NCBI RefSeq assembly: GCF_011386835.1
Contig: NC_088803.1
Location: forward strand, 17,670,001 to 17,734,000
Length of the DNA: 64,000 bases
Reading direction: 5' to 3'
Origin: Chrysemys picta bellii
Taxonomy: Eukaryota
Positions within the stretch are counted from its first letter, which is position 1, and each line of letters opens with the position of its first letter. Shown one piece after another: positions 9,560 to 63,817 of this stretch. Under the pieces are notes generated by a model. It was not told where the DNA came from. It did not search any database and saw nothing but the letters and a program-made list of their open reading frames with translations. The translations under genes and the position numbers were made by a program.

Positions 9560-9670
9560 CGCGGGGCATGCTGGGAGCTGCAGTCCCGCGCGGGGCATGC
9601 CGGGAGCGGTAGTCCGGCCCGGGAACACTGGATCCGAGCGGGATCCCGGCGGAGCGCGGCGCCCCCTGCG
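9560..9670. promoter_or_regulatory. CpG-rich promoter with two tandem ZNF143/Staf (SBS) motifs and a probable non-coding first exon of the ZNF gene (donor after 9670)
   Basis: cgcggggcatgctgggagctgcagtc (9560-9585) and cgcggggcatgccgggagcggtagtc (9589-9614) are the reverse complement of ACTACnnnTCCCAGCATGCCCCGCG. Donor is cg|gtaaga. Confidence 0.7.
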
Positions 9671-10073: not shown

Positions 10074-11462
10074 ATGGCCCAGGGGACCCCTCCTGTGATG
10101 TTGACCCCGGCTGGGCTGGCGGCCCTAGGATGCCTGCAGCAGGGTGGAGCCAGTGCCCCCCAGCAGGAAGGGGATGGCGACAGCGGGCACCGGGCTAGTG
10201 GAGATGTGGGGCCGGATGTGTGGTGGGAAGAGGTGCAGGGAGACACGGGGATGCTCTCAGATCTAGGTGGCCGAAGGAAGGGGGACCATGGGGGCCAGGC
10301 CATGGGGGCGGGGGAGCAGACAAGAGCCGGGGGACCGGCTGCCCTGGTGCGCCCCCGGCGGTACGGGTGCAGCGTGTGCGGCAAGGCCTTCTCGCAAAGC
10401 TCCACGCTGATTGTGCATCGGCGGTCGCACTCGGGCGAGCGCCCCTACACCTGTGAGGAGTGTGGCCGTGCCTTCGCCCAGAGCTCGGGCCTGGCCAAGC
10501 ACCGGCGGGTGCACACAGGTGAGCGCCCCCACCCCTGCCCCGAGTGCGGCCGGCGCTTTGGCAAACGCTCCAACCTGGCAGTGCACCGGCGGGCCCACAC
10601 TGGTGAGCGCCCCTTCCCCTGCCCCGCCTGCCCCAAGGCCTTCGCCCGGCGCGCCGACCTGGCTGTGCATGGCCGCACCCACACCGGGGAGCGACCCTAC
10701 CACTGCGCCGACTGCGGCAAGGGCTTCAGCACTGGCTCCAACCTGGCGCAGCACCGGCGCACGCACCAGCCTGATCGGCCTTACCGCTGCACCCAGTGTG
10801 GGAAGGGCTTTCCCGGCAGCTCGGAACTGCTGCGCCACTGGCGCTCCCACACCGGGGAGCGGCCCTACCACTGCGGCATCTGCGGCCTGGCCTTCGCCCA
10901 CAGCACGGTGCACCGGCGCCACCAGCGGGCCCACCTGGAGGAGTCGCCCTACCGCTGCAGAGACTGCGGGCGCAGCTTCGCCCAGCGTTCTGACATGGTG
11001 GTGCACGGCCGCACCCACACTGGTGAGCGGCCCTACCGCTGCCCCGACTGCCCCAAGGCCTTCGCCCAAAGCTCCCACCTGGCCACCCACCGGCGCAGCC
11101 ACACCGGCGAGCGCCCCTACCGCTGCCCTGACTGCCCCAAGGCCTTTGCCCAGAGCTCAGCCCTCACCGTGCACCGGCGCACCCACACTGGCGAGCAGCC
11201 CTACGCCTGCGGCGAATGTGGCCGACGCTTCCACCGCAGCTCCAATCTTATCCGTCACCAGCGCACCCATACGGCCGAGCGCCCCTTCGCCTGCCCGCAG
11301 TGCGGCCGACGCTTCCACCGCCGCTCCAACATGGTGGTGCACCAGCGCACCCACTCCCGGGACAAGGGGCTCTGCCCGCCGGCTGCCAGGGACGCTGCCC
11401 GCTGGGGGGCCTTGGAGACAGAGAGCCCTAGCCCTGTGCCCACAGCCACGGGGACTATATAG
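10074..11462 (+). CDS. C2H2 zinc-finger protein, 12 tandem fingers, no KRAB or SCAN domain visible, 462 aa
   Basis: Single ORF after the acceptor at 10053. Twelve CxxC...HxxxH fingers with TGE(R/Q)PY linkers. AATAAA at ~11922. Confidence 0.93.
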   Translation: MAQGTPPVMLTPAGLAALGCLQQGGASAPQQEGDGDSGHRASGDVGPDVWWEEVQGDTGMLSDLGGRRKGDHGGQAMGAGEQTRAGGPAALVRPRRYGCSVCGKAFSQSSTLIVHRRSHSGERPYTCEECGRAFAQSSGLAKHRRVHTGERPHPCPECGRRFGKRSNLAVHRRAHTGERPFPCPACPKAFARRADLAVHGRTHTGERPYHCADCGKGFSTGSNLAQHRRTHQPDRPYRCTQCGKGFPGSSELLRHWRSHTGERPYHCGICGLAFAHSTVHRRHQRAHLEESPYRCRDCGRSFAQRSDMVVHGRTHTGERPYRCPDCPKAFAQSSHLATHRRSHTGERPYRCPDCPKAFAQSSALTVHRRTHTGEQPYACGECGRRFHRSSNLIRHQRTHTAERPFACPQCGRRFHRRSNMVVHQRTHSRDKGLCPPAARDAARWGALETESPSPVPTATGTI

Positions 11463-13319
11463 CCCTGCCCTGGCCTTAGAGCCCCGCTCGTATGCTGTGA
11501 TGTGCTCTCCTCAGCCCGTGCCGGGCGCTGCACCCCCAAAAGGCCCTCAACGAGGCAGGGCGAGCGGAAGGCTGGCAACGACCTGGCAGGGAGAGCGCTT
11601 GGCATGGCCCCTTCGCCCATCCGTGAGGCCCAGCCGCAGCAGCAGCAGCGAGACAAAGTAGGCTGGGAGCTCAGGGGCCGAGTTTGCACCTTGAGAGTGA
11701 TTTGCCGGGGAACTGCCCCTCCATCACTGGGCGCTGTTACAGCCAGACCATGCTGGAAGCCAGGTGCTAGCTCCACCACCAGATAGGGGCTGGCCACTGG
11801 GATCTTCGCCAGCTCCCTGCTCTGGAGTTCAGGGCCCAGCTACCTCTGGAAGGAGGATGAGGATGGTCTGCAGGCTGCATGTGGGGAGGAGGGGAAGCTG
11901 GGGCTGATGCTTCTGTTTTGAAATAAAGCATTTGTACCCTTTTGCAAGACGATCCCCATTTCCTCAGGGGCCCTCATCCCACTGGGAAGCCGCCCTCCCC
12001 AATGGTAGGTGGTGTCCCACCCACCCCTGGGCCATGCCCAGCCTGTCCCAGCATGCACTGTGAGCATAATGCTCTCCCCTGGTCTGTAGCGCCTAGGTGA
12101 GAGGAGGCAAGCTGAAAATCTTGGGGGAGGGGAAGAAAATATTCTGCATGGGGGGGTAGCAGAAGGGCCCATAGCTGGGGCAGTGTATGTGGGGGGGTGG
12201 TCTGTAGGGGCTTTATGGGCCAGCCTGAAATAGTCTGGATTAGCGAAACAGCCCCAGTCCTGGTCTGGATGAGCATAAATAACCAGACTGGGGCCATCTA
12301 TACAGAATCTCGGGGATGGTTTCAGTGATCTGAACTGGGCTAGGAGTCCCTGTGGTCCATATGGGACTACATCGGCCCAAGCAGGGGGCTTCATAGATTC
12401 CAAGGCCAGAAGGGACCATTGTGATCTTCTAGGCTGACCTAGTATCTCACAGGCCAGAGAACCGTCCCAAACAATTCCTGGTGCGGGTCTTAAAACATCT
12501 GAGTGAGATTTAGAAATCATCAGCGATAGTGAATCCACCCGGTCCTTGGGACATTGTTCCTGTGGTTAATTACTCTCCTCATTAAAAAGCTATGCCTGAT
12601 TGCAGGGACCAGATTGGATTGGGATATATGGCCTGGCATATGTCTGTAGGGGTGAGATGGCTTTGTTCTTTAAGAGCCCACAAAGGGGTGCTGGTCAATA
12701 TGGGATTATATGGCCTGTGTGGAGGGAGGTGAGATACAAAAGAGTTTGGAGTAGAATGCTCTGAATTGGTTTGTGAACCCATATAAGGGGTTGGGGGAAG
12801 GGTCCGTATAGAATTACCTCCTGGTCTGTACTAGGATATATGACCTGGGGTAGAACAATCCAAACCTACAAAGCTATATTGCCCTGTTGTAAATATCTGT
12901 CACATCCAAAGGGGGAACAAGTGAAGGTCGCAAGGTCAATCACTGAAAACGTAGCCAGCGGCTCAATGCGGACTGTGTCACCCTACAGCCCTAAGAACAG
13001 TGTCCACACCCCGGGCGCCCTGTCTTGTTCAGTTGCATGGGACAAACAGCAGGTCAATATCTTGGGTTGGCCTCCTTGGTCAGTGGGCGGCCCTGGGCCA
13101 TATTTCACAGACTGGTGAATGGGAACGGGGGGGTTATCCCATCTGACAGGTGGTTTGTATGGCTTTGTGTGGCACCTGCAAGGCCCATACAGGTCTATAT
13201 GGCCTATGGTAGGCTGTGAGGAGGATGCAAGGCCTATACAGGCTGTACTGCTCCTAGCACGAAGCAAGGAGGATGTAGGGCCCATACAGGGCAGCTGTGC
13301 AGAGGGTTGTACAGCCCAG

Positions 13320-13604
13320 GGGCTTGTCTATACTTACCGCGCTGGTTCGGCGGCAGGCAATCGAACTTCTGGGTTCGATTTATCGCGTCTTGTCTGGACG
13401 CGATAAATCGAACTCAGAAGTGCTCCCCGTCGACTCCGGTAATCCTGCTCGCCGCGAGGAGTACGCGGAGTTGACGGGGGAGCCTGCCTGCCGGGTCTGG
13501 ACCGCGGTAAGTTCGAACTAAGGTACGTCGACTTCAGCTACGTTATTCATGTAGCTGAAGTTGCGTACCTTAGTTCGATTTGGGGGTTTAGTGTAGACCA
13601 AGCC
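13320..13604. mobile_element. Harbinger-type non-autonomous MITE, 285 bp, 3-bp TSD CAG
   Basis: Termini gggcttgtctatac...gtgtagaccaagcc, with internal palindromes (tcgatttatcgcgtc..gacgcgataaatcga). CAG at 13317-13319 and 13605-13607. The paralogous site at ~56661 is empty, with a single CAG. Confidence 0.88.
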
Positions 13605-13757
13605 CAGGAGGGCTGAGGGGGAGCAGACAGAGCAGGACCTCTCAGGCTTATCGGCTGTTGGGAGGTTGCAAGCCCTATACAGCCCTGTATGGCTGGGGGG
13701 GAGGGGGGAATAGAAATTGGTTCACTTTTGGAGAGCTAGCAAATGTTTGCCCAGGGG

Positions 13758-13844
13758 ATATATTAGCCTCCAGACACTCTGGTCTTTACAAGTGACGATG
13801 AGCAGGCAATGCAATTCTCGGCATGTGCCGCGGCGTACGCAAAT
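13758..13844 (-). promoter_or_regulatory. Type-3 Pol III (H1/RPPH1-like) promoter, left copy, partly degenerate
   Basis: On the minus strand: ATTTGCGT (octamer variant), an SPH-like cacatgccgagaattgca, TCATCGTCACTTGTAAAG (PSE-like), then TAATATAT, all within ~90 bp and head-to-head with PARP2. Confidence 0.7.
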
Positions 13845-13899
13845 CGCCCCCCTTTCACGTCTTCACGCGAAGTGGGGATCTAGGGGGCTCCCGCCCCCC

Positions 13900-14175
13900 C
13901 ATACTCCCAGCATGCACCGCGCCCGCTATGCAAATGACCCTGCTCCGCCCGCCAATGAGTGTCGCCGAGCGGCGAGCCCCGTGTGTGTCTCACATAGTAC
14001 CATGCGCGCCTACCAGCTAGGGGCGGGGCTCCGGCTCCTCCACGCCCGCGACCGGCCAGGGCAGGGGACGGGGCAAATGCAAAGGAGCGATATGCAAATG
14101 AGGATGGGCTGCGCGAGAGTTTGGTTCCCGGAACGTTGCCTGGAGCGTGGGCGGGTGGGAGCCGCCGCTCCCAGG
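13900..14175 (+). promoter_or_regulatory. Probable PARP2 promoter and first exon (donor ccag|gtgcgg near 14174)
   Basis: CpG-rich. Contains SBS motif actcccagcatgcaccgcg (~13903), octamers ATGCAAAT (~13928, ~14091) and GC boxes. Confidence 0.55.
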
Positions 14176-15229
14176 TGCGGGGAGGAGAACCCTAGGGGGG
14201 GTGCAGTGGGGGAAGGGTGCAGGGAGAGGTTGGGTTGTAAGGGTGTGGGGGAGCAGGGGAGTAGTGAGGGAGGGGTTCAGGGGGCCTCTAGGGGGTGCAA
14301 TGGGGTGGGAAACATTGGAAGAGGTGCAGGCGTGGTTGGGGGGTGCAATGGGGCTGGGGTTGCAGTGGGGGAGGTCGGGGGGGGTGCAATGGGTCGGGGG
14401 GGTTCAATGGGTCAGGGTTACAGTGGGGGGGGGTGCAACAGGGCTGGGGTTGCAGTGGTGGTCTGGGGGCATGCAAGGGGGGACGGGGTGCTCTGGGAGT
14501 CCCCGGAAGTGGGGGTGTTCTGGGAGCAGGGAGTTAGGGTCAAGGGGGGAAAACGCGAAGGGTTAGGATATTGCATTGAGGGCGGGGGGCTGTGGGGAAC
14601 GCAGTGGGGCCTGGAGCTGTTGCAGAGTCCCAGCGGGGGAGGGAACTGGTTCATGGAGTGCTACATAGATCATGGTGGGATGGTCCATATAAGGCTGTGA
14701 GAGTGGGCAGGGAGGAACATGCTCATTCATATAGGGCTGTGTCGCCCTGGGGATCTGCTGGTACATACAGGGCTGTGTGGATCTCTATAGGGTGGTCTGT
14801 ATAGGGTGATCGTGGGGGGGTGCTGATCCATACAAAACTGTATGAATTGCTGTAGGTTGGTCAGTATAGGGTTATATGGCGGGGGGGGGGTAAGAAGCTA
14901 TATGGATTGCAGTAGAATGGCCCATATGGGGTTCTATGACCTGAGGGGGTGGGGTTGTGCTGGTACATACTGGGCTATATGGATCTTGGTAGGATGGTCT
15001 GTATAGGGCTATATGTCCTGGGTGGGTGCTGGTTCTTACACAGCTGTATGGATGGCAGTAGAATGGTCTGTATGGGGCTATATGGCCTGGGATGTGTGTG
15101 TACTGGTCCATACAGGCTGTATGGATTTCAGTAGGATGATCTGTATGGGGCTATATAGCTTGGGGATCACAGTCTGTGGATCCCTGCCTCCCTTCTCTCT
15201 GCTCGCCAGCCCCGCTTGTCACTCCCAGG

Positions 15230-18200
15230 ATGAGGCAGAAGCAGAGGGCAGCCGAGGCGGGGGGTGCGGGCCTGGCACTGGAGCTGCGCTGGGAGTGGCA
15301 GGACTCCGGCGGCACCTGGCATCGCTTCGTGCCTGAGCAGAGCGAGGTGCTGACACAGGCAGCCAGGTGAGTGCCCTGGGGGTGGGGGGGTGTCGTTGCT
15401 CGGGCTATGGTGGGGGAGTCACAGGCTCTGAGCCGTGTCCATCTCCCCCCAGGGCAGGGAAGCCCAGCGTGGCTGTGGGTTCCCGCGTGGATCTGCGGCG
15501 GATGGTGCAGCGGGATGGACAGACGGGGCAGGACAGATGTGTGGCAGCCGCTGTCCAGGACCAGGACTCCTGTGAGTGCCCAGGGCCCCCTGGTGGGGGG
15601 AGCAGTGTCGTCCCGGATGCCTGGGTCCCACGCCCTGTCCTGATCACTCCCCCGAGTATGGGGCACCCTAGGGGTCAGCACCCTGCTGTGCTGCCCAGAC
15701 ACCTGTGTCCTATGCCCACTCGCCGTCACTGCCCCAGAGGCTGGGAGCTGTGGGGCCCCCGGGGGTGAACGCCCTGCTCAGCCACCTGGACACCTGGGTC
15801 CGATGCCCCATCACCATCACTGCCCCAGAGGCTGGGAGCTGCAGGGTTAGCGCTGGCAGGGAGCTAACAGGATGCCCGTGGCCCAGATTTCATGTGGTGC
15901 TGGCAGGGGGACGAAGAGGGGCAGTGGCTGCCCTACCCTGCCGATACCTGCCTGGCGCTGGAGCGAGCGCGGCGCGGCGACGGGGGGCCCAGCCTAGAGG
16001 TGACGTTCAGCCGGACCCGCTACACATTGGACACGGCACAGATGACCCAGACCAACATCAGAACTGGGTACCAGCGCCGGATGGAGCGGAGGGAGTCAGG
16101 TACTCCTGGGTTCTCTCCCTGGCTTTGTGAGGGGAGTGGGGCCTAGTGGGTAAAGCGGGCTCTGTGGGAAGCTGGGGGAAGGGGTTCAGGCTCCCAGGGC
16201 CCAGCTCCGGTTGGTGAGCAGGTCTCGGGCACCTGGGGCGGGGCAGGCCTTGCTGCCAGAGTGTAAGCTCGTTAGTCATTAATCATCCCCCAGGGAGCTC
16301 GGAGGAGAATCTGACGCCAGGCACAGCTGGGTCACAGCGACAACGCACAGGGTGGCTTGCCTGGTGCTGAGATGCGGCCATCTCTGGGGTGTGGCACTCT
16401 CCCCCTCTCACCCATGGCCTCTCTCCACAGACGCTGTGGATGATGATGGGGGATCTGAGCCCAGCTCCGTCCCTGGCTCCTCGTCCCCCCAACGGCCCCC
16501 AGCGCCGAAGAGACCCCGGGATGGGGGGGCCAGCCCCAACCCCGGAGCCGGGGAAGAGAGCACAGGTGAGGGGTGGCGAACTACAGCACCCCTGGTCTGC
16601 CGGCCTCTCTCTGCCAGCTGTTTGTTCCAACCTTGGTTTTCTGGCTCTGCCCCCTTCCAATAGATTACCATCTAAAACAGGGGCGGGCAAACTTTTTGGC
16701 CTGAGGGCCACATCAGGTTTGTAAATTGTATGGAGGGCCGGTTAGGGGAGGGGGTCATGGCCTGGCCCCCACCTCCTATCTGCCCCCCCACCCCCTGGAC
16801 TCCTGCCCCATACAACCCTCCCTGTTCCCTGATGGACCCCCTGGGACCCCTGCCCCATCCATACACCCCTGCTCCCTGTCCCCTGACCGCCCCCAGATCC
16901 CCGCCGCCCCATGCAACCCCTCTTCTCGTTCCTGACGGCCCCCCTGGGACTCCTGCCCCATCCACCTTCTTCCTGTCCCCTTACTGCCCCTGGAACCCCT
17001 GCCCCTGACTGCCTCCGACTACCCCGTGCCGCCCCATCCAGCACCCCCCCCCGACTGCCCCCCTCAGGACCCCGCCCCCATTCAACCCCTTATTCCCCCC
17101 CCACCCCCTGACCACCACCCTGAACTCCCCTGCCCTCTATCCAACCCCCCCTGCCCCCATACCGCGCTGCCTGGAGCATCGGTGGCTGGCGGTGCTACCG
17201 CCACGCCGCCGCCACTGCGCAGCACAGAGACCAGGTCAGGCCAGGCTCTGCAGCTGCGCTGCCCCAGGAGCTCACAGCTCTGCCGCCCAGAGCATTGTGC
17301 TGGTGGCGGAGCGAGCGAGCTGAGGCTTTGGGGGGAGAACAGTGGAGGAGGGGCTGGAGGCTAGCCTCCCCGGGCCAGGAGCTCGGGGGCCAGGCAGGAC
17401 GGTCCCGTGGGCCGGATGTGGCCCGGCGACGATGTGTGCAGATCTACCAGTTAGCCAGTTTTTAATCCGTGTGTCAGGCACTTTGTCACTAGCCCACAGC
17501 GCTCGGTTTTCAGTCGGGTCACACGGTGCCAAGTCGCACAGCATATAAAGTTCCCTGTATCGACGAAACCCGTAACGTCACCAACGGATGAGATCAGCTT
17601 TGTTTGTTTTCCGTGAAGCCTGCCTGGCCTTGCTGAAGTTCCTGGGCTTTAACCTGGGATTGCTTGAATCCCGCATCAGCTTTTGTGTTATTCTTCCCGG
17701 GCTTTTCGTCAGGCTAACTGGCCTAAAGCTACACACTCATCCGCTCTTCAGGAATGTTCCCTCTATCCCGGGTTGATTTCAGATGAATGCCAGCAGGTCA
17801 GAGATAATCTCAGCCAGCTCTTTTGCGACTCGGGGCTGCGAGTTAGGCAGCCAAGCTGATTTGGAAACGGGTGTGATTTATAAGTGCCTCCCCTATCCTG
17901 CGCTAGGAGTGCGTGATGTCGGCCTTGGGCGCTGCTGGTTCCTCGTGGCTGCCTGGGAAGGGGCCCGTGGCGTGGCTGGAGCTCTGTTGTTCCTCGAGCA
18001 CCAGGCCCTACCTTGGCTCAGGTCCCTAGGATCCCTGCACTGATATCTCTTAAATCCTCTCCCCACCCCCATTTCTGTCTGTCACCCCCAGAGGTCATCA
18101 AGACCCTGATTGTGAAGGGGAAGGCGCCGGTGGATCCAGAGTGCTTGGCTAAACTGGGGAAGGTAACGCAAGACCTCCTGCCCCGGGGGTCTCCAGTCCC

Positions 18201-29497: not shown

Positions 29498-31399
29498 CCA
29501 GGACGCCTGGGTTCTCTGCCAGCTCTGGGAGGGAGTGGGGCCTGGCGCATTGGGGAGAGGGGGACAGGGCTCGGTGCCCAGATTCTGGGGTTCTCTGCCC
29601 AGTCACTCACCAGTTCGTACAGGGTGGGTTCTTTCACCCCCTTCCACAGAAGAAGCCGCCCATCTGGGGTCACAGCCACATCAAACAGGTACTCAGGGGG
29701 GTCTGGAACCCAGGCGTCCGGGCTGACTAAGCTACAGGGGCAGAGACGAGAGTCAAACCCAGGAACGTAGGGGGCTGCCCCCCCCAATCCCCCATTCACC
29801 AGAGGAGCTGCAGGGCCCCCCAACCTCCCCCATTCACCAAGGGAACTGCAGGGACCCCCCCTGAACCCCTCACTCACCGAAGGAGCCACAGGCGCACACA
29901 CACACCCCACCTCCCGACTCACCAGAGGGGCTTCAGCACCTCCCTCCTGCTCCCCATCTCGCCCACTCCATCTGTCTTCCCCTCTCTCCTCCCCTGCCTC
30001 CCACCACACCCCCCAGCCTCAGGGAGCAGCCCCATCTCTCCACCACCACCCCCCGCAACATACCTGCACCGTGGCCAGGGACTTGGCCTCCCCCCACACA
30101 ATCAGCTCCCCACACTCCCCGCCTGACACCGCCAGTGTCCCGTCGGGAGACCAGGCAAGAGCAGAGATGGCCCCACGGTGCCAGCCGGGACCCTTGACAC
30201 ATCCTGCCAGGAGAGAGACAGGCTGGGAGCCAGGACTCCTGGGTTCTCTCCCCTGCTCTGGGAGGGGAGTGGGATCTGGTGGGTTAGAGCAGGGGACACT
30301 GGGAGCCAGGACTCCTGGGTTCTCTCCCAACTCCGGGAGGGCAGTGGGGTCTAGTGGTTAGAGCAGGGCTGGGAGCCAGGACTTCTCTGGCTTCAGGAGG
30401 GAAGGGGTATCCGGTGAAGCAGTCTCTTACCCATTTGCCAGGGCGCTGCCCACACGTGCACAGCACCATCTCCTGACACTGTCAGGACGCGGGCAGCAGC
30501 CGGGCTCACGGCAGCACCACACACCGGGGCACTGTGCCCCACCAATGCCCGCGGGCGGCCGAACTGCAGGCAGGAGAGAGAAGTTAGTGGGGGAGGGGCA
30601 GCCAGTGCCCTGGGGCAGGGTCCCCATGGGGGGGGGGAGGGGAATAGCCCCCGGGTCCCATCTCACTTCCAGGGGGCTCCAGAGCTGCACCCGCCCGTCG
30701 CATCCAGCCGTGGCCACCACAAAATCGCCGTATGCAGGAGAAGAGCGACACGGAGAGATGGGCACTGGGGGAGAGCAGGGGGCACTGGGGGTCAGACCCG
30801 CACCGGGGGAGTGGGGGAGCGGCAGTGCCTGCTCACTGGCTCCCACAAAACCAGCGCCCTGGTTCACCAGCCCGGGGTGCGCCGGGAAGCGGGTCAGCTC
30901 CACGCCCAGCATGTCCCATGCTGCCAGCGTCCCATCGCAGACCACCGCCAGCACGCGCCCAGCCTGCGCTGAGGAGGGGGTGAGGGATGGTGCCAGTGCC
31001 CAAGGTGCTCCCCCATGCCTGGCACCGTGCCCCCCCCCTCAGGTATGTACCATGGCCAAGACAGCACTGACAGGGCCGCAGTGGGGTAGGAACTCGCGGA
31101 GCCGCTGGCCGGTTGCCGGGTCCCAGAGCCGCACAGTGCCATTGCTGGAGCAGGACAGCTGCGGGGGCAGAGGAAGGGGACAAGTCAGGGAGGAGCTGCC
31201 CCCCCCGCCTCCCTCCCAACTACCCCCCCACTCACCAGCAGGGGCCCGACCCAAACGCAGCCGCTGAGCTAGTCGCGGTGGCAGAAGGGGAGCGAGCGCC
31301 AGAGGGGGGAGGCTCCCGCTGTGGGGCCCCCCACGTCCCAGCACAACAGGGTCTGCGGGGAAACGGGCTGGTTAGACGAGCAGATACAGCAGGTCTGCT

Positions 31400-33185
31400 C
31401 CCCCCACCTCCCAATGCCCATCTCACAGCATGGCTGCCCCACGCCTGCCCCACACCGCCCCCTAGTGCCCATTTCACAGCACAGCCGACCCACGCCTGCC
31501 CTACACCGCCCCCTAGTGCCCAACACACCACACCGCCCCCTAGTGCCCATCTCACAGCACGGCCGGCCCACACTTCCCCCTAGTGCCCATCTCACAGCAC
31601 AGCCGCCCCACACCGCCCTCTAGTGCCCAACACACCGCACTGCCGCCCCACACTGCCCCCTAGTGCCCAACACACCGCACTGCTGCCCCACACCATCCCC
31701 TAGTGCCCATCTCCCAGCATGGCTGCCCCACGCCTGCCCCACACTGCCCCCTAGTGCCCATCTCACAGCGCAGCCGGCCCACACCGCCCCCTAGTGCCCA
31801 TCTCACCGCATTGCTGCCCCACAACCACCCCTAGTGCCCATCTCACAGCATGGCTGCCCCACGCCTGCCCCACACTGCCCCCTAGTGCCCATCTCACAGC
31901 ATGGCTGCCCCACGCCTGCCCCACACTGCCCCCTAGTGCCCATCTCACAGCGCGGCCGGCCCACACCGCCCCCTAGTGCCCAACACACCGCACTGCCGCC
32001 CCACACCACCCGCTAGTGCCCAACACACCGCACTGCTGCCCCACACCATCCCCTAGTGCCCATCTCCCTGCATGGCTGCCCCACGCCTGCCCCACACTGC
32101 CCCCTAGTGCCCATCTCACAGCACGGCCGGCCCACACTTCCCCCTAGTGCCCATCTCACAGCACAGCCGCCCCACACCGCCCTCTAGTGCCCAACACACC
32201 GCACTGCCGCCCCACACTGCCCCCTAGTGCCCAACACACCGCACTGCTGCCCCACACCATCCCCTAGTGCCCATCTCCCAGCATGGCTGCCCCACGCCTG
32301 CCCCACACTGCCCCCTAGTGCCCATCTCACAGCACGGCCGGCCCACACTTCCCCCTAGTGCCCATCTCACAGCACAGCCGCCCCACACCGCCCTCTAGTG
32401 CCCAACACACCGCACTGCCGCCCCACACTGCCCCCTAGTACCCAACACACCGCACTGCTGCCCCACACCATCCCCTAGTGCCCATCTCCCAGCATGGCTG
32501 CCCCACGCCTGCCCCACACTGCCCCCTAGTGCCCATCTCACAGCATGGCTGCCCCACGCCTGCCCCGCATGGCCCCCTAGTGCCCATCTCACAGCGCGGC
32601 CGGCCCACACCGCCCCCTAGTGCCCATCTCACCGCATTGCTGCCCCACAACCACCCCTAGTGCCCATCTCACAGCATGGCTGCCCCACGCCTGCCCCACA
32701 CTGCCCCCTAGTGCCCATCTCACAGCATGGCTGCCCCACGCCTGCCCCACACTGCCCCGTAGTGCCCATCTCACAGCGCGGCCGGCCCACACCGCCCCCT
32801 AGTGCCCAACACACCGCACTGCCGCCCCACACCACCCGCTAGTGCCCATCTCACAGCACAGCCACCCCTCACCGCCCCCTAGTGCCCAACACACCGCAAT
32901 GCCGCCCCACACTGCCCCCTAGTGCCCATCTCACAGCATGGCTGCCCCACACCACCCCCTAGTGCCCATCTCACAGCACAGCCGCCCCACACAGCCACCT
33001 AGTGCCCAACACACCGCACGCCTGCCCCACACCGCCCCCTAGTGCCCAACACACCGCACTGCCGCCCCACACTACCCCCTAGTGCCCATCTCACAGCACA
33101 GCCACCCCACACCGCCCCCTAGTGCCCAACACACCGCACGGCTGCCCAACACTGCCCCCTAGTGCCCATCTCACAGCACACACAC
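31400..33185 (+). repeat. ~1.8-kb GC-rich minisatellite (~38-41-bp units) in a TEP1 intron
   Basis: Dozens of units anchored on cccctagtgccca(tct/aca)ca. Larger blocks recur, for example 31763-31966 and 32589-32792 (826-bp offset). Confidence 0.97.
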
Positions 33186-36252: not shown

Positions 36253-37668
36253 TAGGGCTACCATATCCAGCAAATAAAAAAAGAGGACCCTCCACGGGCC
36301 CTGGCCCTGCCCATTTCCCACCACAGCCCCGCCCCAACTCCACCCCCTCCCCACCCTAACTCCGCCCCCTCCTCCCTCCCACTCCCAGCCACGAGGAAAG
36401 GGCTGCCCCAGCGCTACCGGCTTCACGGTTTGCCGGGCAGCCCCCAGACCCTACGCCCCCGGCCGGCGCTTTCCCAGTGCAGCTGGAGCCCGGGAGGGGA
36501 AGCGCCCAGCCGGGGGCGCAGGGTCTGGAGGTTGCCCGGCAAACCGTGAAGCCGGTAGCGCTTGGGCTTCAGGCAGCTCCCTTGCCTCCGGACCCTGCGC
36601 CCCCAGCCGGGCACTTTCCCTCCCGGGCTCCGGCAGCGCAGGGTCCGGAGGCATGGGGGCTGCCCGAAGCCGGTAGCGCTCGGGCAGCTCGGCTCTTAAA
36701 CAGAGCCGAAGAGTCAGGGGAGGAGCAGAGCCTCCAGCCGCCGGGGCTCTGTGTAACTGACACAGTGTCAGTTACACAGAGCCGCAGCCGCTGGAGGCTC
36801 TGTTTAAGAGCCGGGTTGCCCGAGAGCTACTGGCTTCGGGCAGCCCCCTTGCCTCCGGACCCTGCGCCCCCAGCCGGGCACTTCCCCTCCCGGGCTCCGG
36901 CGGCGAAGGGTCCGGAGGCACGGGGGCTGCCCGAAGCCGGTAGCGCTGGGGCAGCCCGGCTCTTAAACAGAGCCTAAGAGGAGCAGAGCCTCCAGCTGCG
37001 GGGGCTCTGCTCCTCTTCGGCTCTGTGTAACTTATACAGTGTAAGTTACGCAGAGCCGCCGGCGCCCCGGAGGGGAAGTGCCCGGCTGGGGGCGCAGGGT
37101 CCGGAGGCATAGGGGCTGCCCAAAGCCCGAGCGCTACCGGCTTCACAGTTTGTTGGGCAGCCTCCAGACCCTGCGCCCCCGGCTGGGCGCTTCCCCTCCC
37201 GGGCTCCAGCTGCGCTGGGGAAGCGCCGTCTGGGGGCGCAGGGTCTGGGGGCTGCCCGGGAAACCGTGAAGCTGGTAGCACTGGGGCAGCCCTTTCCCCC
37301 TGGCTGGGAGTGGGAGGGAGGAGGGGGCGGAGTTAGGGTGGGGAAGGGGTGGAGTTGGGGCGGGGCTAGGGGTGGGGAAATGGGCGGGGCCAGGGCCCGT
37401 GGAGGGTCCTCTTTTTTTATTTATGAGATATGGTAACCCTACCGGGAGGGGAAGTGCCCGCCGGCGGCTGGGGTCCGGAGGCAAGGGGTCTGCCCGAAGC
37501 TGGTAGCGCTCGAGCAGCTCGGCTCTTAAACAGAGCCGAAGAGTCAGGGGAGGAGCAGAGCCGCCATTTTCCCGGACATGTTTGGCTTTTTGCAAATTCC
37601 CCCCAGATGGGGGTTTGAGTGCCAAAAGCCGGACATGTCTGGGAAAAAGAGGACGTATGGTAACCCTA
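36253..37668. mobile_element. hAT-type non-autonomous element(s), probably nested or rearranged
   Basis: tagggctaccata at 36253; tatggtaacccta ending at 37441 and 37668. Internal repeated ccggagg/ctcttaaacagagcc motifs. No matching TSD found. Confidence 0.55.
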
Positions 37669-41829: not shown

Positions 41830-42700
41830 GTGTGGAGTGGGGAGAGGGGAAGCCCAGCCAGGGGTGCTGTGCTGCAGGGAGTGGGGGCGGGGCTCGGCAG
41901 GGGGCGCCATGCTGCAGGGAGCTCGGAAGGGAGCGCTGTGCTGCAGGGAGCAGGGGGCTCGGCAGGAAGCATTGTGCTGCAGGGAGCGGGGGGCTCAGCA
42001 GGGGGTGCTGTGCTGCAGGGAGTGGGGGCTTGGCAGGGGGCGCTGTGCTGCAGGGAGTGGGGGGCTCGGCAGGGGGCATTGTGCTGCAGGGGACTCGGCA
42101 GGGAGCATTGTGCTGCAGGGAGCAGGGGGCTCGGCAGGGGGCGCTGTGCTGCAGGGGACTCGGCAGGGAGCATTGTGCTGCAGGGAGCGGGGGCTCGGCA
42201 GGGGGCGCTGTGCTGCAGGGAGCGGGGGGCTCGGCAGGGGGCGCTGTGCTGCAGGGCGCGCTGGGCTGCAGGGAGCGGGGGGCTCGGCAGGGGGCGCTGT
42301 GCTGCAGGGAGCAGGGGGCTTGGCAAGGAGCACTGCTGCAGTGAGCAGGGGACATTGTGCTGCAGGGAGCGGGGGCTCGGCAGGGAGCATTGTGCTGCAG
42401 GGAGCAGGGAGCTCGGCAGGGGGCGCTGTGCTGCAGGGAGCAGGGGGCTCGGCAGAGGGCATTGTGCTGCAGGGAGCAGGCAGCTCGGCAGGGAGCATTG
42501 TGCTGCAGGGAGCGGGGGGCTCGGCAGGGGGCGCTGTGCTGCAGGGAGCAGGGAGCTCGGCAGGGGGCGCTGTGCTGTATGGAGTGGGGGCTCGGCAGGG
42601 GGCGCCGTGCTGCAGGGAGCTCGACACAGGGCTCTGTGCGGCAGGGAGCTCTGGGCTGCAGGGAGTGGGGGCTCAGCATGGGTCATTGTGCTGCAGGGTG
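41830..42700 (+). repeat. ~36-bp GC-rich minisatellite
   Basis: Units gtgctgcagggag(c/t)gggggctcggcagggggcgct. These account for the multi-frame ORFs at 41373-42833. Confidence 0.96.
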
Positions 42701-47400: not shown

Positions 47401-49023
47401 ATCGGCGGGGAGCTCCGGCTCGGCAAGAAGATCCCAGGCTAGCTCGGTTCCCAAGACAGCAGTGGGGAGCTCTAGGATGGCGGCGATGCCCCGGTCCAGG
47501 AAGAAGCTGGGGGTGAAGACATCCTCTCGGTGCTCCTGGATGAAGCGAACCTGGAGAGGCGAGACGGGCACCGACAGGACCCAGAATGCCCTGAGCAGCT
47601 GCTGGCACCGGCTCTCCACCTCGGCCACCTGCCGGCAGGGCCCCGGAAGATGATGATAGCTGGGGCGCCCTGTCGAAGCTCCATGCTGACGTGGGGTCAA
47701 GGAGCTCCTTCACCACGTCCTTGACGATGACCCACCTGGGCAGAGGCTCGGCCGAGTACTCCCGGCTCACCAGCTGCCTCTGGAAGGCCCTCACAGCCAG
47801 GTGCTGGAGGAATGGTGCCATCTCCCCTGCCAAGCCGACAAAGCCCACCCCTTCATAGACCCGGATGAACCCGAACTCCTCCACCAGGGATGGCTCGGCA
47901 GCCAGGGCCTCCAGCAGGTCCTCTCGGCCCTCGTGATGCACCACGTAACGCTGGCACACTGAGCGAAATGCCGCTTCCCAGCCGCGCGGCTCCTCAGGGC
48001 TGGCCACTGTCAGGAAGGTCAGGATTCCCCAGTGGGGACAGGCCTGGAACCCGTAGCCGGCCTCCTCCAGGCGTCCCTTGAACTCTCGCCGCACGACCGG
48101 GCTCTCGTCCACATAGCGAAGGAAGAGGCCAGCAGAACCCCACGGCCTCTGCGGGGAGAGAGGAGAATGTCTGGGACCCGCCGGTGAGTCGGAGAGCCGG
48201 GAGGGGCCTGGCCCTGGGGGTTCGGGCACCCGACTGCCGTGGATTGTACAATGCGGGGGGGGGGGGGGTCAAGCTACATGGAGGGGTTAGATACCCTTGA
48301 GTCCTTCTGAGATACCTCAAATGGCGCTGGGCGGCTCAGCAGATGGCGTTCTCCCCCAACAGTCAGTGCTGGCCCCATTGCAACACCAGGGGGCGCTGTG
48401 CGACAGGGAGCAGGACTTCAGCAGGGGGCGCTCTCCCCCTAGCAGTCAGGGCTCTGGTGGCGATGCAGCATTTCAATATGGCTGGCCCTGGTGATTTGGG
48501 GAACTGGGGACACGCCCACCCCCCAGGAACCCAAGCAAGAGGTTGGCAGCTGCTGCCTTTGATGGCTCCCAGCCTGAGTCACACAGCTGGTGCTGGGGCA
48601 CGGCACCCACCCAGCTGCCTTCTGCCTGGGGTGGTGGGAGGCCAAGGGGGCTGCGAGTGTGGGGGGTCCCCAGCAGCAGGCGTCGCTGCTGGGCCTGACA
48701 GGGGCGAGGCACAAGGAACCATCGGATTGGCGCTCCAGGATCAGCCCAGGAGGTCAGTGGGGAAACTGAGGCAGGGCCATGCGTATTACTGTCAGTCTGG
48801 CTGTAAGTCAAGAGCACTGGAGTTGGGGCCGCATCAACTGTCACAGACCCCTGACCGTAACCCCCAGTGCCCCATGGCTGGAGAGACTCGGGGGGGTTAT
48901 CACTGCTCATGGGGGTCCCATTTCTGAGAAGCACTGGGGAGCGGGGCCTGTGCCGGAGAGGCCAAGGGGAGAGACGCTGCTGCAACCCACTGAACACAGA
49001 GGCCCCAGGTGCGAGCCCCAAAC

Positions 49024-49077
<54 letters not shown>

Positions 49078-51891
49078 GAGAAGTAAGCCGATATTCCTTC
49101 AGCGAGGCCTCCAGTTCTGGAAGTGGGAACTCGAGGAGAGAAGAGACAGACGGGTGATGTCTGTCCGTTACGCGGCACCTAGCTGGCGACAGAGGCTACG
49201 AAACACAAGGTATTTAGGATTCGCTGCTATCTTAGCTTCAAGGATGACCTAACACCTTTTTTCACTCGGCTTCATTAACCCGTGAGAACTCCCAGGCTTT
49301 TCTCTCCTGGAAGTCTCTATGGATGCCAGGGAAACAGGGAGCACACAGGTAAGTTCGTTTGGTTTTCAAGACATATTTTTGCTTTTCAGAAACTGCCCAT
49401 GGCAACGGCTTCAGTAAAAAGTTTCATTTTTGGCGGGGAAAAATTAGTTTTCAGAAACTGCTTCCAGCAAACCGGCTGCTTTTCAGTGACACCTCTGGAG
49501 GCTCAGCACAAATGTTCAGTTTACAAAACCTGCTGATGTTAAAACAAAATGGTAAAACAATGGCTATTAACCAGGATGTTCAGGGATGGTGTCCCTAGCC
49601 TCTGTTTGTCAGGGGCTGGGAATGGGCGACGGGATGGATCACTGGATGATTACCTGTTCTGTTCATTCCCTCTGGGGCACCTGGCATTGGCCACTGTCGG
49701 AAGACAAGCTACTGGGCTAGATGGACCTTTGGTCTGACCCAGTATGGCCGTTCTTGTGTTCTTACGTTCAGGTTTTGGTCAAAATTTTCAGTTTGGGGGG
49801 GGGGGGAATCCGTTTTGGGGAAAGAAAGACTTTCCGATTTTCCTAGGACTTAGAGAAAAGGAGGGTGGTGAAGCACTGGAATCGGTTACCTAGGGAAGTG
49901 GTGGAATCTCCATCCTTAGAGGTTTTTAAGGCCCGGCTTTACAAAGCCCTGGCTGGGATGATTTAGTTGGGGTTGTTCCTGCTTTGAGCAGGGGGCTGGA
50001 CTAGATGACCTCCTGAGGTCCCTTCCAACCCTGATAGTCTATGATTCTATGAAAAGATTCTGAATTTCCCTAACAAACCAGATATGATGGAGGGAAAATG
50101 TTTGCCACAATTTTATGGTTTATGGGCTTTTCTATGAAAAACTGAAATACATCAATTTCTCCAGGATGCTGTTCGGTTTGGAACAACTCTGGGTGGAGAA
50201 CTGCCGACCCGCTCTAGAGAGTGATATTGCTGTACCAAGTGGTTTAGGAGCCTAAAGACAGAGTGGCGCCTCATTGGCTTAGACTTGCTAAGGCCTGTCT
50301 AGGCACCTAAACCCCTTGCTACGTTCTGTCCCAGGCATCTAGTAGAGCTGGGTAGCAGAGGGAGGGGGGGATCCAGGGGCTACAGCAGAGATCCGTGGAG
50401 TATGAGGTGGCCCCCCCTTTACCTCTGGCGCCCCCTGCTGCTGCAGTGCCTCGCCATCCAGCTGCACAAGGTACAGCACTTTGCAGTGGAGATCCGGTAG
50501 GGCCGTGCCTGGCACCGTCAGCACCTTCCCCGGTTGGAGCTCCCCGCTGTGGCCTGCAGCTGCCAGCGCCCTCTCTGCCAGGGCCTGGACCTCCTGAGAG
50601 CACCACTCCAGCCCATCCGTCTCCAGCACCACCGGCAGCACCAGCACATCCATCTGTCCCCAACACAGAGCCAAGGAGCGTGAATAGACGCTCGGACCGG
50701 CTCCTTGGGGGCTCATCGCTCCCCCCCTCTGGGCCTGGGGGGCTCCAAACAAGTTGAGCCCTAGATAGACCGTCTTCCTACAGAGCAGCTGGGAGAGAAG
50801 GTGCTAAGGATAGAACCCAGGAGTCCTGGCTCCCAGCCCCCTCCCTGCTCTAACCACTAGACCCCACTCCCCTCCCACAGTCGGGAGAGAACCCAGGAGT
50901 CCTGGCTCCCAGCCCCCACTCTAACCAAGGCACTGACCTTCTGGCTGGTGAGGGACCCGCTGACCACCTGGGTGCGGACTCTCTCCTGGGCCCGGAGGAC
51001 ATTCCCCAGCAGCTCCTGCCGGTTCTTGCCAAGCGGCCACCGCTTGGCACATGCCCTATGGAAGGTGGCCACCAGGGCCCCATCAGCGGCCACCACAGAG
51101 ATACTGCTCACGGGGGCGGCAGGGCAGCCCCGGGCGAAGGTGTCGATGGCTTCAGCCATGGCCTCCACCAGCCACATGCTTTCCGAGTTCACACAGACGG
51201 CCACAGAGGTGACCTGCATCTGGGCTGCAGCCTCCAGGGTCAGCAGCACCGCCCCGGCTGCCAGTCCCTCGGCAGGGAGCAGACTTCCAGGCAGGCGTGA
51301 GGAGCCCCTCGCCGGCTCAACGCCCTCCGGGTCACCACGCTGGCCCCGCTGTCCGGGCCGGACTCACCACCCAGCCTCACCACGGCGCCCGCCCGGATCC
51401 CAGCGCCGTCTCCCTCCCCGAGGCATAGGCTGATCCCTGGGCACGGCCGGAAGAACCAGCCCACCGAGGGCACTGCCCTGCCCACCAGGATCAGCAGCTC
51501 ACTGATGGCCACTTTGGCAGCCAGCGCTGCCTCCCGGGGGCCAGAGAGGGCCAGGGTGCCAGCATCCCCCTGGCAGTGCCTGCTGGCCATCACCTGCCAG
51601 AGGGAGGGTGCCAGGACCTCCGAAAGCTGCTCCCACAGGTCCATCTCTGGCAGTGTAATGAACAAGGTCTCTGTGCATCAGGCTCCCGGGGCGGGGGGCT
51701 CCTTGTGGGCCCCGGTGGGTGGGTCTCAGCTCTGTCCTTGCCACAGGCCCCTCAGAGCACAGCTTGGCCCTCTCCCCTGCCTTGGCATCGCTGGTGGGGG
51801 GCAGGAGGCACCGCCCAGCTCTGCCCCCGAGGGCCACCGGCACACCAAGCTTGCTTGAGAGTCATCCCCAGATGGCCAAGACGGGTCCCAT
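44463..51891 (-). pseudogene. PARP14/PARP9-like macro-KH-WWE-ART gene, right copy, disabled. Exons ~51891-50939, ~50652-50419, 48148-46717, 46200-46146, 45965-45435, 45150-45014, 44634-44463
   Basis: KH-like array (GEYLCGEGATLLQDLAQQLCCVVSL), WWE (VKWQHLALAGWHPFNVATNQWLETAY...AEIDL) and ART start (PHWEPM...LAEGSEEYQEVAKGF; IQKVQNRVLW.SY...NERLLYHGT). Lesions: TGA at 51862-51864; indels near 51690 and 51270; loss of the second macro exon; 11-bp deletion near 48125; two 1-bp homopolymer deletions (~47695, ~47640); final catalytic exon not found. Confidence 0.85.
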
Positions 51892-54027
51892 CGTGGCCCG
51901 GAGTGCCCAGCAGGTCGACAGCGCAACCCGCAACAGCGCAGAGGGGCCAGGAACGGCTCACGGCCCATGCCTGGTCTTGGAGCTCTGCTAGAGACAGCGC
52001 CGGGTGGTGGTTAGAGTGGGCACCAGCAGACTGGACTCCTGGGTTCTATCCCTGGCTCTGGGAGGAGAGTGGGGTCTAGTGGTTAGAGCGGGGGGGCACT
52101 GGGCACACGAGGAGAGATGTCCCCTCCACAGTGTGCTGGCCAGCCAGTGCCGCCCCTGCGCGGGGCCCAAAATGGGTGGCTGGTGCCAACCCCAGTGCTG
52201 TGTCTGGCCCTTGGCTGTGCCAGCAGCCCCAACAGATGATCCACTGCTCCATGGCCACCAATCCCCCTCCATCCCGGGCGCTCCCACCTACCTGCTGCAC
52301 CAGCCTCTGCCCTCACAGCCCCCTCTGCGGGCTCACACTCCTCCGACACCTCCTTGGCTCAGGCCCAGCTGGGCAGAGGAGCTGCCAGGGCAGATTGAAA
52401 CCTCCCTGGATGCCCGGCTGGGGAGTGAAGGTTCCCCCGCCCGGGTTTCACTTTCCATTCCTCCCCAGTGCCAGTGAGTTTCATGCTCGTAGGTGGGGCA
52501 GAGTGGCTTTGGCCCCAGGAGAAGCCACACAGCTGAGGTGGAGCTGGAGAGGCCAGGGGCTCTGGGAAGCCAAGTGGAGGGATTGCCCGCTGGGCTGGGC
52601 ACATCCAGAGCAAACCTGGGCAACGGGCCCAATGGTGTAACTGAAATCTGTCTGCAGAGCGACTCACAAACGCCAGCCAGATCTCCTTGTGCTCGGGACT
52701 GAACGCTGATCTCCGCGCCCCCTTCCCCTCAACCCAGGGTCAATCTGGAGTCACTCCCAATAGCAGTGGGGACAGGGCTGGATTCTGCTCCCAGAACCCT
52801 GGGGTCAAGCCGGTGTCACGCCCTACCTGCAATGGGATTACTCCATTGGAGTCAATGGGGCCAGGTGCCCAGGTGTGGACTGTGGCCAGTGCAGCATTGC
52901 AGCCAGCAGGGTGATGCTGGTTTGCACCAGCAGCTGGCCAGCCGCGCGTACTGGGGGCTTTGGGGGGGGGGTTGCTCTGGGGGTGGGGGCAGAGAAGGAA
53001 GCTGGGGCAGCCAGATGGGGGGAAGTCAGCTGGGCAGTTGCAGGTGGATTGATGTGCCAGAGCTGGACCGGATTTATTGCCCCCAACCTGGGGGGGGGGT
53101 GAAGTGGGGGTCATCCTATCTCTTTGCAGTGTTGTATGCGGCTGTTCCGCATCCCAGCGCCGGACAAGCTATCCCTATGCAGTGTTATATGTGGCTGTCC
53201 CGCAGGGGCCCCATCCCAGAGCTGGCTGCATCTCAGAGGCAGGTGCCCCATCCTCTCTCCTGGGCTACATTCGCCATACCCACCACCCTCCACACCCAGC
53301 AGGCAGGACCCAAGGAGGGGGCTATCAGCCAGGCTCAGAGGGAGAATTTGGGGCCATTGGTGTCACTGGGATCTGGGGCAGCCCTCTAGCATTGCCCCCT
53401 CCTGGTATCATGTGTGGACCCACAGCAGCTGGACCCCAATACCTTAGAGGCCATCAGCCAGCGCCAGAGATTCATGTGGTATTACTCTAATGCAGGAGAG
53501 GAGAGCCCGTAGGTGTTAGGGGGAAATCAGTCCGTGTGGCCTGCGGAACTCACTGCTTCTTGTGTCTGGGATGGTGGAGGGGCAGGCTGCAGACCGTGTG
53601 TGGAAAGGGGCTACATTGAGCAGGAATCACAGCCCACCAACCCACCCTGAGTCCCCCACGCTGTCCCCTTACCTGGGCTTCCTGCGTGAGGGTGGTTCAC
53701 CCCATGCTGAAATGCAGCTAGCTCTGGGTTGGGGCAGCTGGGGAACAGCCGCACATAACACTGCACAGGGTGGCTCACCTGGCACTGAGATGCAGCTAGC
53801 TCTGGGTTGGGGCAGCTGGGGAACAGCTGCACATAACACCACATGGAGATTCCCCAGGTCAGGAATTGGAAGAGATGGTCTGGCTGGGTTCTGCCCGCTA
53901 ATTCAACTCCCGCTCCCTGCCACATGGGGCATTTCATTTGCTTCCCGAAAGCTCTTTGAGCCCTGTCTGAACTGCCCGCTGGGTGCAGCTTACATCTCCC
54001 TGGAATAAAGCTTCGCCAAGAGCCCCG

Positions 54028-54790
54028 CACTGGTGAGCGACCCTACCGCTGCGCCGACTGCGGCAAGGGCTTCAGCACTGGCTCCAACCTGGCGCAGCAC
54101 CGGCGCACGCACCAGCCTGATCGGCCTTACCTCTGCGCCCAATGGGAAGGGCTTTCCCGGCAGCTCGGAGCTGCTGCACCACTAGCGCTCCTACACCGGG
54201 GAGTGGCCCTGCCATTGCGGCATCTGCGGCCTGGCCTTCGCCCACAGCACGGTGCACCGGCGCCACCAGCGGGCCCCACCTGGAGGAGTCGCCCTACCGC
54301 TGCGGAGACTGCGGGCGCAGCTTCGCCCAGCGTTCTGACATGGTGGTGCACAGCCGCACCCACACTGGCGAGCGGCCCTACCGCTGCCCCGACTGCCCCA
54401 AGGTCTTCGCCCAAAGCTCCCACCTGGCCACCCACCGGCGCAGCCACACCAGCGAGCGCCCCTACCGCTGCCCTGACTGCCCCAAGGCCTTTGCCCAGAG
54501 CTCGGTCCTCACCGTGCACCGGCGCACCCACACTGACGAGCAGCCCTACGCCTGCGGCGAATGCAGCCGACGCTTCCACCGCAGCTCCAATCTTATCCGT
54601 CACCAGCGCACCCATACAGCCGAGTGCCCCTTCGCCTGCCCGCAGTGCGGCCGACGCTTCCATCGCCGCTCCAACATGGTGGTGCACCAGCACACCCACT
54701 CCCGGGACAAGGGGCTCTGCCCGCCGGCTGCCAGGGACGCTGCCCGCTGCGGGTCTTGGAGACAGAGAGCCCTAGCCCTGTGCCCACAGC
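54028..54790 (+). pseudogene. 5'-deleted, disabled copy of the C2H2 ZNF gene
   Basis: Matches 10680-11462 only. TGG>TAG at 54183-54185, frameshifts near 54140 and 54275, and finger residue changes (H.H>HTH, TGE>TDE/TSE). Confidence 0.9.
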
Positions 54791-56819: not shown

Positions 56820-56907
56820 ATATATAAGCCTCCCAGACACTCTGGTCTTTACAAGTGACGGTGAGCAGGTGATGCAATTCGCGGCATGTGCCGCGGCGTA
56901 TGCAAAT
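56820..56907 (-). promoter_or_regulatory. Type-3 Pol III (H1/RPPH1-like) promoter, right copy, consensus-like
   Basis: On the minus strand: ATTTGCAT (56907-56900), an SPH-like motif, TCACCGTCACTTGTAAAG (56864-56847), a 19-bp spacer, then TTATATAT (56827-56820). Confidence 0.8.
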
Positions 56908-63813: not shown

Positions 63814-63817
63814 GTGA

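Follow-up and report, generated by a model that had tools for sequence, protein, structure and literature searches.

A probable relic of the RPPH1 promoter beside turtle PARP2, at a place where no RNase P RNA gene is found

The window analysed here is a stretch of 64,000 nucleotides from Chrysemys picta bellii, and it contains a tandem segmental duplication. Positions 1-21557 match 47886-63817 at 94-97% identity, with a period of about 47.9 kb. The duplicated segment contains a zinc-finger exon, most of PARP2 and the compact block of promoter motifs that is the subject of this report. Both copies are collinear with the single locus of Chelonia, so that the duplication, as judged from this alignment, seems to be confined to emydids or to the Chrysemys lineage. 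Copy 2 is without about 1 kb that is present in copy 1 (13887-14930), including a distal promoter element and an alternative first exon of PARP2, exon 1a. To the left, copy 1 has a C2H2 zinc-finger gene, of which the last exon (10074-11462, plus strand) is an open reading frame with tandem HTGERPY linkers. Its AATAAA polyadenylation signal lies at 11921-11926, and the corresponding RNA contigs end at 11898-11953. PARP2 follows on the plus strand. Its first coding exon (15229-15362, ATG at 15230) encodes the first WWE domain; two WWE exons follow the ATG, and catalytic exons continue to a stop codon near 23480. The promoter block faces away from PARP2, and the stretch behind it is a 1.8-kb intergenic spacer.

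Repeats are abundant in this spacer and elsewhere in the window. Copy 1 alone carries a palindromic, high-copy, MITE-like insertion of 280 bp (13321-13600), which reaches a depth of 10^3-10^5 in all sequencing runs; the insertion-free form is seen in run X14. The insertion gives a sub-threshold Rfam match to the mir-2574 hairpin (42.5 bits, against a gathering score of 90). A very high-copy repeat at 12390-12550, with depth up to 3x10^4, is conserved in position in Chelonia and Emydura. An old minisatellite with units of 66-81 nt, CCATACAG...TATGGGCC, occurs on both sides of the promoter in all three turtle lineages (window 14897-15164; Emydura L003 11383-11784 and 12561-12746; Chelonia L004 9606-9939). 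Large tandem arrays at 31395-33180 and 41860-42698 give many shifted self-matches of 77-87% identity, and the former array is common to Chelonia (L004 22023-22967). Sub-threshold miRNA-like hairpin matches on both strands at 36409-37265 are probably palindromic repeats. Two adjacent Staf/ZNF143-like sites on the minus strand at 9560-9606, each with two mismatches, lie about 500 bp upstream of the zinc-finger exon and may belong to another promoter.

The promoter block is present on the minus strand of both copies, at 13844-13758 and 56907-56820. Direct reading finds an octamer, a proximal sequence element (PSE) and a TATA box in each. In copy 1 these are the proximal octamer ATTTGCGT (13837-13844, one mismatch, at about -100 from the predicted start), the PSE TCATCGTCACTTGTAAAGAC (13782-13801, 5' half TCATCGTCACTT..., one mismatch) and the TATA box TAATATAT (13758-13765). 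All three motifs are at consensus in copy 2, where the block is bordered on both sides by the minisatellite: the octamer ATTTGCAT is exact (56907-56900), the PSE TCACCGTCACTT starts at 56864 with no mismatches in its 5' half (TCACCGTCACT), and the TATA box is TTATATAT (56827-56820). An earlier note on this DNA, made from the letters alone, had listed these three motifs in both copies together with an 'SPH-like' motif. The three are confirmed; the fourth misses the Staf consensus within three mismatches. A genuine Staf/ZNF143 site does exist in copy 1, 60-90 bp upstream of the block, as part of a distal element at 13890-13935. The site itself (13904-13921, plus orientation, one mismatch) is the best Staf site of the window, and it is accompanied by an exact octamer on the minus strand (13928-13935).

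The spacing of the motifs is that of a type-3 promoter. From the start of the PSE to the start of the TATA-like A/T run is 36-37 nt in the composite scan (36 in copy 1), and a manual count places the TATA box proper about 38 nt after the PSE start. The corresponding distance is 36 in U6 and 38 in H1. Motif spacing puts the predicted Pol III start of copy 1 at about 13737-13735 and that of copy 2 at about 56797. The PSE lies some 55-65 nt before that start and agrees with TCACCNTNAST at 9/9 positions in copy 2 and 8/9 in copy 1; the TATA box stands at the fixed distance from the PSE, about 25-30 nt before the start. A distal octamer with a Staf/SPH site is found in copy 1, in addition to the proximal octamer, while copy 2 has the proximal octamer only. 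The short transcribed gene with a T4-5 end that would complete such a unit is missing. By its motifs the block is a predicted type-3 promoter, and occupancy by SNAPc, TBP/BRF2 and Pol III is predicted at most. The arrangement was sought with a composite scan that combines a PSE 5' half with no more than one mismatch, an A/T-only heptamer that includes TATA and lies 34-40 nt further on, and an octamer within 120 nt. It matches these two sites only in the 64-kb window. Simulated Markov windows of the same dinucleotide make-up give 0.013 matches per window when the octamer is left out of the pattern, and none in 150 simulations when it is included. Three of the five exact octamers of the window fall here, against 0.61 expected across the whole window.

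The DNA behind the TATA box contains no recognizable Pol III gene. Rfam at gathering score returns no match in the entire 64-kb window, and models of RNase P, MRP, U6, 7SK, Y and vault RNA give nothing at E<=10 between 11500 and 14500, nor at E<=1 in the whole window. The nuclear RNase P RNA model RF00009, which embodies conserved regions CR-I to CR-V and the fold, is likewise silent at E<=10 and, window-wide, at E<=1. The earlier statement that no RNase P RNA lies downstream stands, since the covariance-model match named there as its refutation is not obtained. Permissive Rfam searches of the window and of the Chelonia downstream region yield miRNA and lncRNA matches only, at chance level. 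An nhmmer profile of five tetrapod RNase P RNAs finds nothing significant. The first T4 on the minus strand after the predicted start is reached only after 787 nt in copy 1 and 501 nt in copy 2, and the first 136-139 nt past the start fold no better than shuffled sequences (z = -0.40 and +0.49). What does follow the TATA box is degenerate minisatellite, of the kind also found on the other side of the promoter. It begins within 30-70 nt of the TATA box in all three turtle lineages, and in copy 1 the MITE-like insertion interrupts the region about 136 nt after the predicted start.

PARP2 loci of other vertebrates provide the context for this absence. They were reached by a search of representative proteins, with the last PARP2 coding exon alone as query and then full-length snake PARP2 from its results; loci were fetched from named PARP2 proteins with 10-kb flanks and searched with Rfam at gathering score. 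Nuclear RNase P RNA adjoins PARP2 on its upstream side in each of the six non-turtle vertebrates sampled and at none of five turtle loci. It is encoded on the minus strand in elephant (L001 9431-9760, 251 bits), Tasmanian devil (L007 9403-9747, 248.8 bits), Crocodylus porosus (L002 9170-9481, 134.5 bits), Anolis sagrei (L005 4907-5230, 198 bits) and Xenopus tropicalis (L006 8952-9364, 175.7 bits), and on the plus strand, in tandem orientation, in the sterlet sturgeon (L009 7427-7740, 216.4 bits). RPPH1 and PARP2 are an opposite-strand pair, separated by at most a few hundred bases, in elephant, Tasmanian devil, crocodile and Xenopus; the distance is 4.8 kb in Anolis, and no turtle locus has such a pair. 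All five tetrapod RNase P RNA genes are preceded by a PSE of the TC(A/G/T)CCCT type and, some 30 nt from the RNA, by a TATA box, and a T-run directly follows each RNA. This combination serves to recognize Pol III-type RNase P RNA genes in PMC4287351. The sturgeon RNA, in the same orientation as PARP2, lies within the range of a METTL17-like (Rsm22) gene. On these sequences, the RPPH1-PARP2 neighbourhood appears to predate the head-to-head arrangement. Bird PARP2 does not occur among the best 120 relatives in the protein search, which include reptiles, amphibians, fishes and mammals. This is in keeping with PARP2 not being known from birds.

The five turtle loci without an Rfam match to RNase P RNA are those of the side-necked turtle Emydura macquarii (L003), Chelonia mydas (L004) and Emys orbicularis (L008, a PARP2-like paralogue), and both Chrysemys copies. 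There are no runs of N upstream of PARP2 in L003, L004 and L008. Window positions 5730-36031 are collinear with the PARP2-KLHL33-TEP1 locus of Chelonia, and the same zinc-finger exon is found upstream of crocodile RPPH1 (L002 7123-8119). The collinearity and the shared neighbour show that orthologous places are being compared. The proposal of the earlier note that RPPH1 has moved or been lost from the two Chrysemys copies agrees with the counts of six in six and none in five, and it can be widened: the absence of RPPH1 from its ancestral place beside PARP2 is supported, at the sequence level, for turtles generally. Upstream of the main PARP2 gene of Emydura, beside a plus-strand TEP1, PARP2 exons occur a second time as a partial, inverted copy (L003 1086-1923); the PARP2 locus of side-necked turtles has been rearranged independently.

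The link between the turtle block and a true RPPH1 promoter is provided by the distal element. Crocodile L002 9658-9702 aligns with window positions 13890-13935 at 76% identity over 46 nt (E=0.001), the sole significant crocodile-turtle match in the intergenic region. The element is 177-221 nt from the start of the crocodile RNase P RNA and 154-199 nt from the predicted turtle start. Because the distal octamer and Staf site align with the crocodile promoter at a similar distance from the start, the block is best read as a relic of the RPPH1 promoter. The turtle PSE resembles those that precede the five real tetrapod RNase P RNA genes; it reads TCACCCTACCC in crocodile and TCACCCTCTG in Tasmanian devil. 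Other turtles retain the motifs to different degrees. Chelonia has the exact octamer ATTTGCAT, the PSE TCACCCTCACC and the TATA box TTATATAG, the last placed 37 nt after the PSE start by manual count. Emydura keeps the octamer-like ATTTACAT and the TATA box TTTATATAG but has lost the PSE-bearing segment. The earlier note had named the lack of such conservation, together with a lack of SNAPc/Pol III occupancy, as grounds for giving up the promoter reading; with the motifs kept in Chelonia and partly in Emydura, that refutation was not obtained.

Conservation of the block is uneven. When copy 2 is compared with Chelonia, 23/25 motif positions and 43/63 spacer positions are conserved (one-sided Fisher p=0.016). 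This modest excess hints that PSE and TATA may have had some function during cryptodire history. The octamer-to-TATA block as a whole is 75% identical to that of Chelonia (66/88); block and CpG island stretch together align at 72-73%, against 84.6% in the flank, and past the TATA box the alignment of Chrysemys with Chelonia is poor. At the block, identity between the two Chrysemys copies is 90.7%, compared with 96-97% in the flanks. With Chelonia as outgroup, every one of the three motifs shows a single substitution in copy 1 that arose after the duplication. A manual count from the alignments gives six changes in total for copy 1 and one for copy 2. Intergenic DNA of Chrysemys and Emydura retains about 72% alignable identity, which makes survival of the relic plausible even without selection.

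RNA contigs place copy 1 of the block within transcribed PARP2 sequence. Two contigs come from RNA-derived runs of different studies, X17 and X7; they are unstranded, library types are unrecorded, and both represent copy 1 only. The X17 contig, of 2645 nt, covers 13727-14167 and then 15229-15362, 15449-15571 and 15887-16096 with GT..AG joints, while the X7 contig covers 13697-14170 spliced to 15210. They define an alternative non-coding first exon of PARP2, exon 1a (13697-14174, plus strand), which holds the whole relic block. The donor, cag|gtgcgg at 14174/14175, is joined to both exon 2 acceptors, 15210 and 15229; donor and both acceptors are confirmed on the sequence. A proximal alternative PARP2 start is seen near 14881, reading straight into the exon. 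The block lies inside exon 1a or contiguous with it, the 5' limit being provisional with unstranded contigs. The earlier description of the promoter as head-to-head with PARP2 holds only loosely, as PARP2-spliced contigs cross the block. The contigs extend 10-40 nt beyond the predicted Pol III start. Behind that start no high-depth contig occurs in X7 or X17, in which small non-polyadenylated RNAs are possibly under-represented; depth in bins at 12669-13169 is 3.9-6.4 in X7 and 0 in X17. Contigs from runs of three organism labels lie on or beside the block, and none spans the whole stretch.

One short feature of the spacer may derive from the missing gene itself. Weak minus-strand matches of the nhmmer profile recur at orthologous positions in all the turtle sequences: window 12782-12750 and 56127-56098, Chelonia L004 7834-7800 and Emydura L003 10908-10877. 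They all fall within the last 35 positions of the profile, which comprise CR-V and the P1 3' strand. Scores range from 3.1 to 6.8 bits (4.1 in copy 1, at profile positions 295-327, and 6.8 in L004), and the matches lie about 0.7-1 kb downstream of the promoter. Compared with dinucleotide shuffles of their own downstream regions of 1.5-2 kb, they beat 300 of 300 in each case except copy 2, where the figure is 299. In copy 1 the putative vestige (12741-12782, minus strand) consists of the CR-V-like ACCAATTCAGA, the P1 3' strand and then TTTT; this T4, at 12741, and its counterpart in Chelonia stand at the distance found in real genes. A trace of the RNase P RNA 3' end may tentatively be said to survive about 1 kb downstream. 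A full RNase P pseudogene is not claimed: when the full-length RNAs of crocodile, Anolis and Tasmanian devil are fitted to the DNA downstream of the turtle promoters, the alignment is not significant (z -0.8 to 2.6), and Rfam is silent. The minisatellite was also considered as a derivative of the 3' part of RNase P RNA. One nhmmer match falls inside a satellite unit (L003 12648-12616); the likeness, of one unit type, is one seen by eye, the scores are too low, and this derivation is not claimed.

Probably, then, the block is the surviving promoter of RPPH1, the RNA gene was lost from the locus in the turtle stem lineage, and the promoter now has, most likely, no Pol III product. The course of events can be proposed as follows. 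In the tetrapod ancestor RPPH1 would have stood back-to-back with PARP2 and shared with it the distal octamer/Staf element. We infer that the RNA-coding part was then lost from the side of PARP2 in the turtle stem lineage. The loss is common to Chrysemys, Chelonia and Emydura, and so would predate both the split of side-necked from hidden-necked turtles and the duplication in Chrysemys. The likelier route is loss in place through growth of the minisatellite and decay. If the 3'-end vestige is real, the gene decayed where it stood and was stretched by repeats. A functional RPPH1 elsewhere in the turtle genome is assumed. The distal element may still be useful for transcription of PARP2, and a regulatory role for this octamer/Staf part, one of the possibilities raised in the earlier note, is plausible. 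PSE and TATA would persist through the slow sequence change of turtles, perhaps with some residual constraint. Today the block would be within or contiguous with exon 1a, and would most likely give rise to no Pol III product.

Other explanations were weighed against this one. The promoter could still be active and drive a turtle-specific, undescribed Pol III transcript from about 13736 in copy 1 or 56797 in copy 2. Such activity would suit the consensus PSE and TATA with correct spacing in copy 2 and Chelonia, the higher conservation of motifs than of spacers, and the RNA contigs that pass the predicted start. The idea that a different Pol III RNA is made here, also put forward in the earlier note, nevertheless finds no support in the DNA that would have to encode it: a terminator is lacking within 500 nt, no Rfam family matches, no fold signal emerges, and the TATA box is followed by degenerate minisatellite that in copy 1 is broken by the insertion. 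The poor alignment of this region between Chrysemys and Chelonia, the deletion of the PSE in Emydura and the lack of an abundant contig in the two RNA runs point the same way, and continued activity of this kind is improbable. Chance, or an assembly artefact that hides an intact RPPH1, might be suspected in a GC-rich, repetitive window with a duplicated locus. The simulated frequencies of the composite motif, its orthologous place and its homologous distal element speak against chance. Three independent turtle assemblies, each gap-free at this place, and the two Chrysemys copies agree, and contigs of three organism labels lie on or beside the block, though none crosses the whole stretch; either explanation is barely credible.

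A further alternative is that selection maintains the whole block, PSE and TATA included, because it helps to control PARP2; it might, for instance, belong to a bidirectional Pol II promoter and be bound by Oct-1, SNAPc and TBP. In human cells, expression of PARP2 and of RPPH1 alike depends on the one Staf site between the two genes (PMC3082894). The enrichment of octamers, the modest excess of conservation at motif positions and the position of the block in or next to exon 1a are all in keeping with such a role. Copy 2, however, keeps the block even though some 1 kb is gone there, with the distal element and exon 1a, which indicates that the block is not tied to that PARP2 promoter. The PSE is lost in Emydura, identity with Chelonia in the block, alone or with the CpG island stretch, is below that of the flank, and copy 1 has accumulated six changes since the duplication to the single change of copy 2. 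Selection on the entire block is unlikely on this evidence. Similarly unlikely, in our estimate, is continued recruitment of SNAPc and Pol III by the consensus-grade cryptodire copy (56820-56907, with its equivalent in Chelonia), whether this yields a non-coding RNA peculiar to the lineage or lets the element, with Pol III bound to it, influence how PARP2 is expressed.

The preferred reading, a promoter relic left by a lost gene, has several implications. RNase P RNA is encoded by an essential gene that is usually present in one copy. At the loci examined this gene lies beside PARP2 from sturgeon to mammals, and turtles appear to be a whole order in which this linkage is broken and the promoter left behind. 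The locus would offer a dated natural experiment in the relocation of an essential Pol III gene, and would show a type-3 promoter in decay, or put to new use, within the 5' exon of a Pol II gene. Were the relic alive, a promoter would have persisted for over 100 million years after the loss of its essential gene by taking on a second job. Annotation pipelines that place RPPH1 by synteny should take the case as a caution. The question raised is where turtle RPPH1 resides and what promoter it uses, and the site of bird RPPH1 would be informative. Our literature search found no paper on RPPH1 at the PARP2 locus outside mammals, or on RPPH1 in turtles.

The closest known system is the mammalian H1 (RPPH1) promoter, a bidirectional promoter shared with PARP2 (Ame et al. 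2001, as cited in PMC2871058; Anno et al. 2011, PMC3082894). The turtle block occupies the same place and orientation relative to PARP2. In both, an octamer roughly 100 nt ahead of the start is followed by a PSE and a TATA box, and a Staf/ZNF143 site is held in common with PARP2; the elephant and Tasmanian devil loci have the same order of elements as the turtle block. The turtle TATA box has neither RNase P RNA nor a nearby terminator behind it, and the turtle block is overlapped by PARP2-spliced RNA contigs. The gap between octamer and PSE is 35 nt in the turtle (manual count) and about 21 in elephant and Tasmanian devil. The second, distal octamer/Staf element of the turtle, at -154 to -199, is crocodile-like and unlike mammalian H1. 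The crocodile RPPH1 gene with its promoter (L002 9170-9702) resembles the turtle locus in further respects: a C2H2 zinc-finger exon stands on one side and PARP2 on the other, the distal octamer and Staf-like element can be aligned, and a TCACCCT-type PSE precedes the TATA box, which begins about 37 nt after the PSE start by manual count. The crocodile promoter is followed by an intact RNase P RNA of 312 nt with a T5 end, whereas in turtles minisatellite, repeats and at most a 35-nt vestige of the 3' end take its place. Other type-3 Pol III promoters, such as those of U6 and 7SK, share with the turtle block the distal octamer and Staf site, the PSE, the TATA box and the fixed spacing. Unlike them, the turtle promoter has no recognizable transcribed gene and is a promoter without a product. 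A clade-wide change in the context of this essential RNA gene has a precedent in insects and crustaceans, where RNase P RNA genes have lost their Pol III signals and lie in introns of Pol II genes (PMC4287351). The two cases are opposite in outcome: in insects and crustaceans the RNA stayed and the promoter is gone, whereas in turtles the promoter stayed and the RNA is gone.
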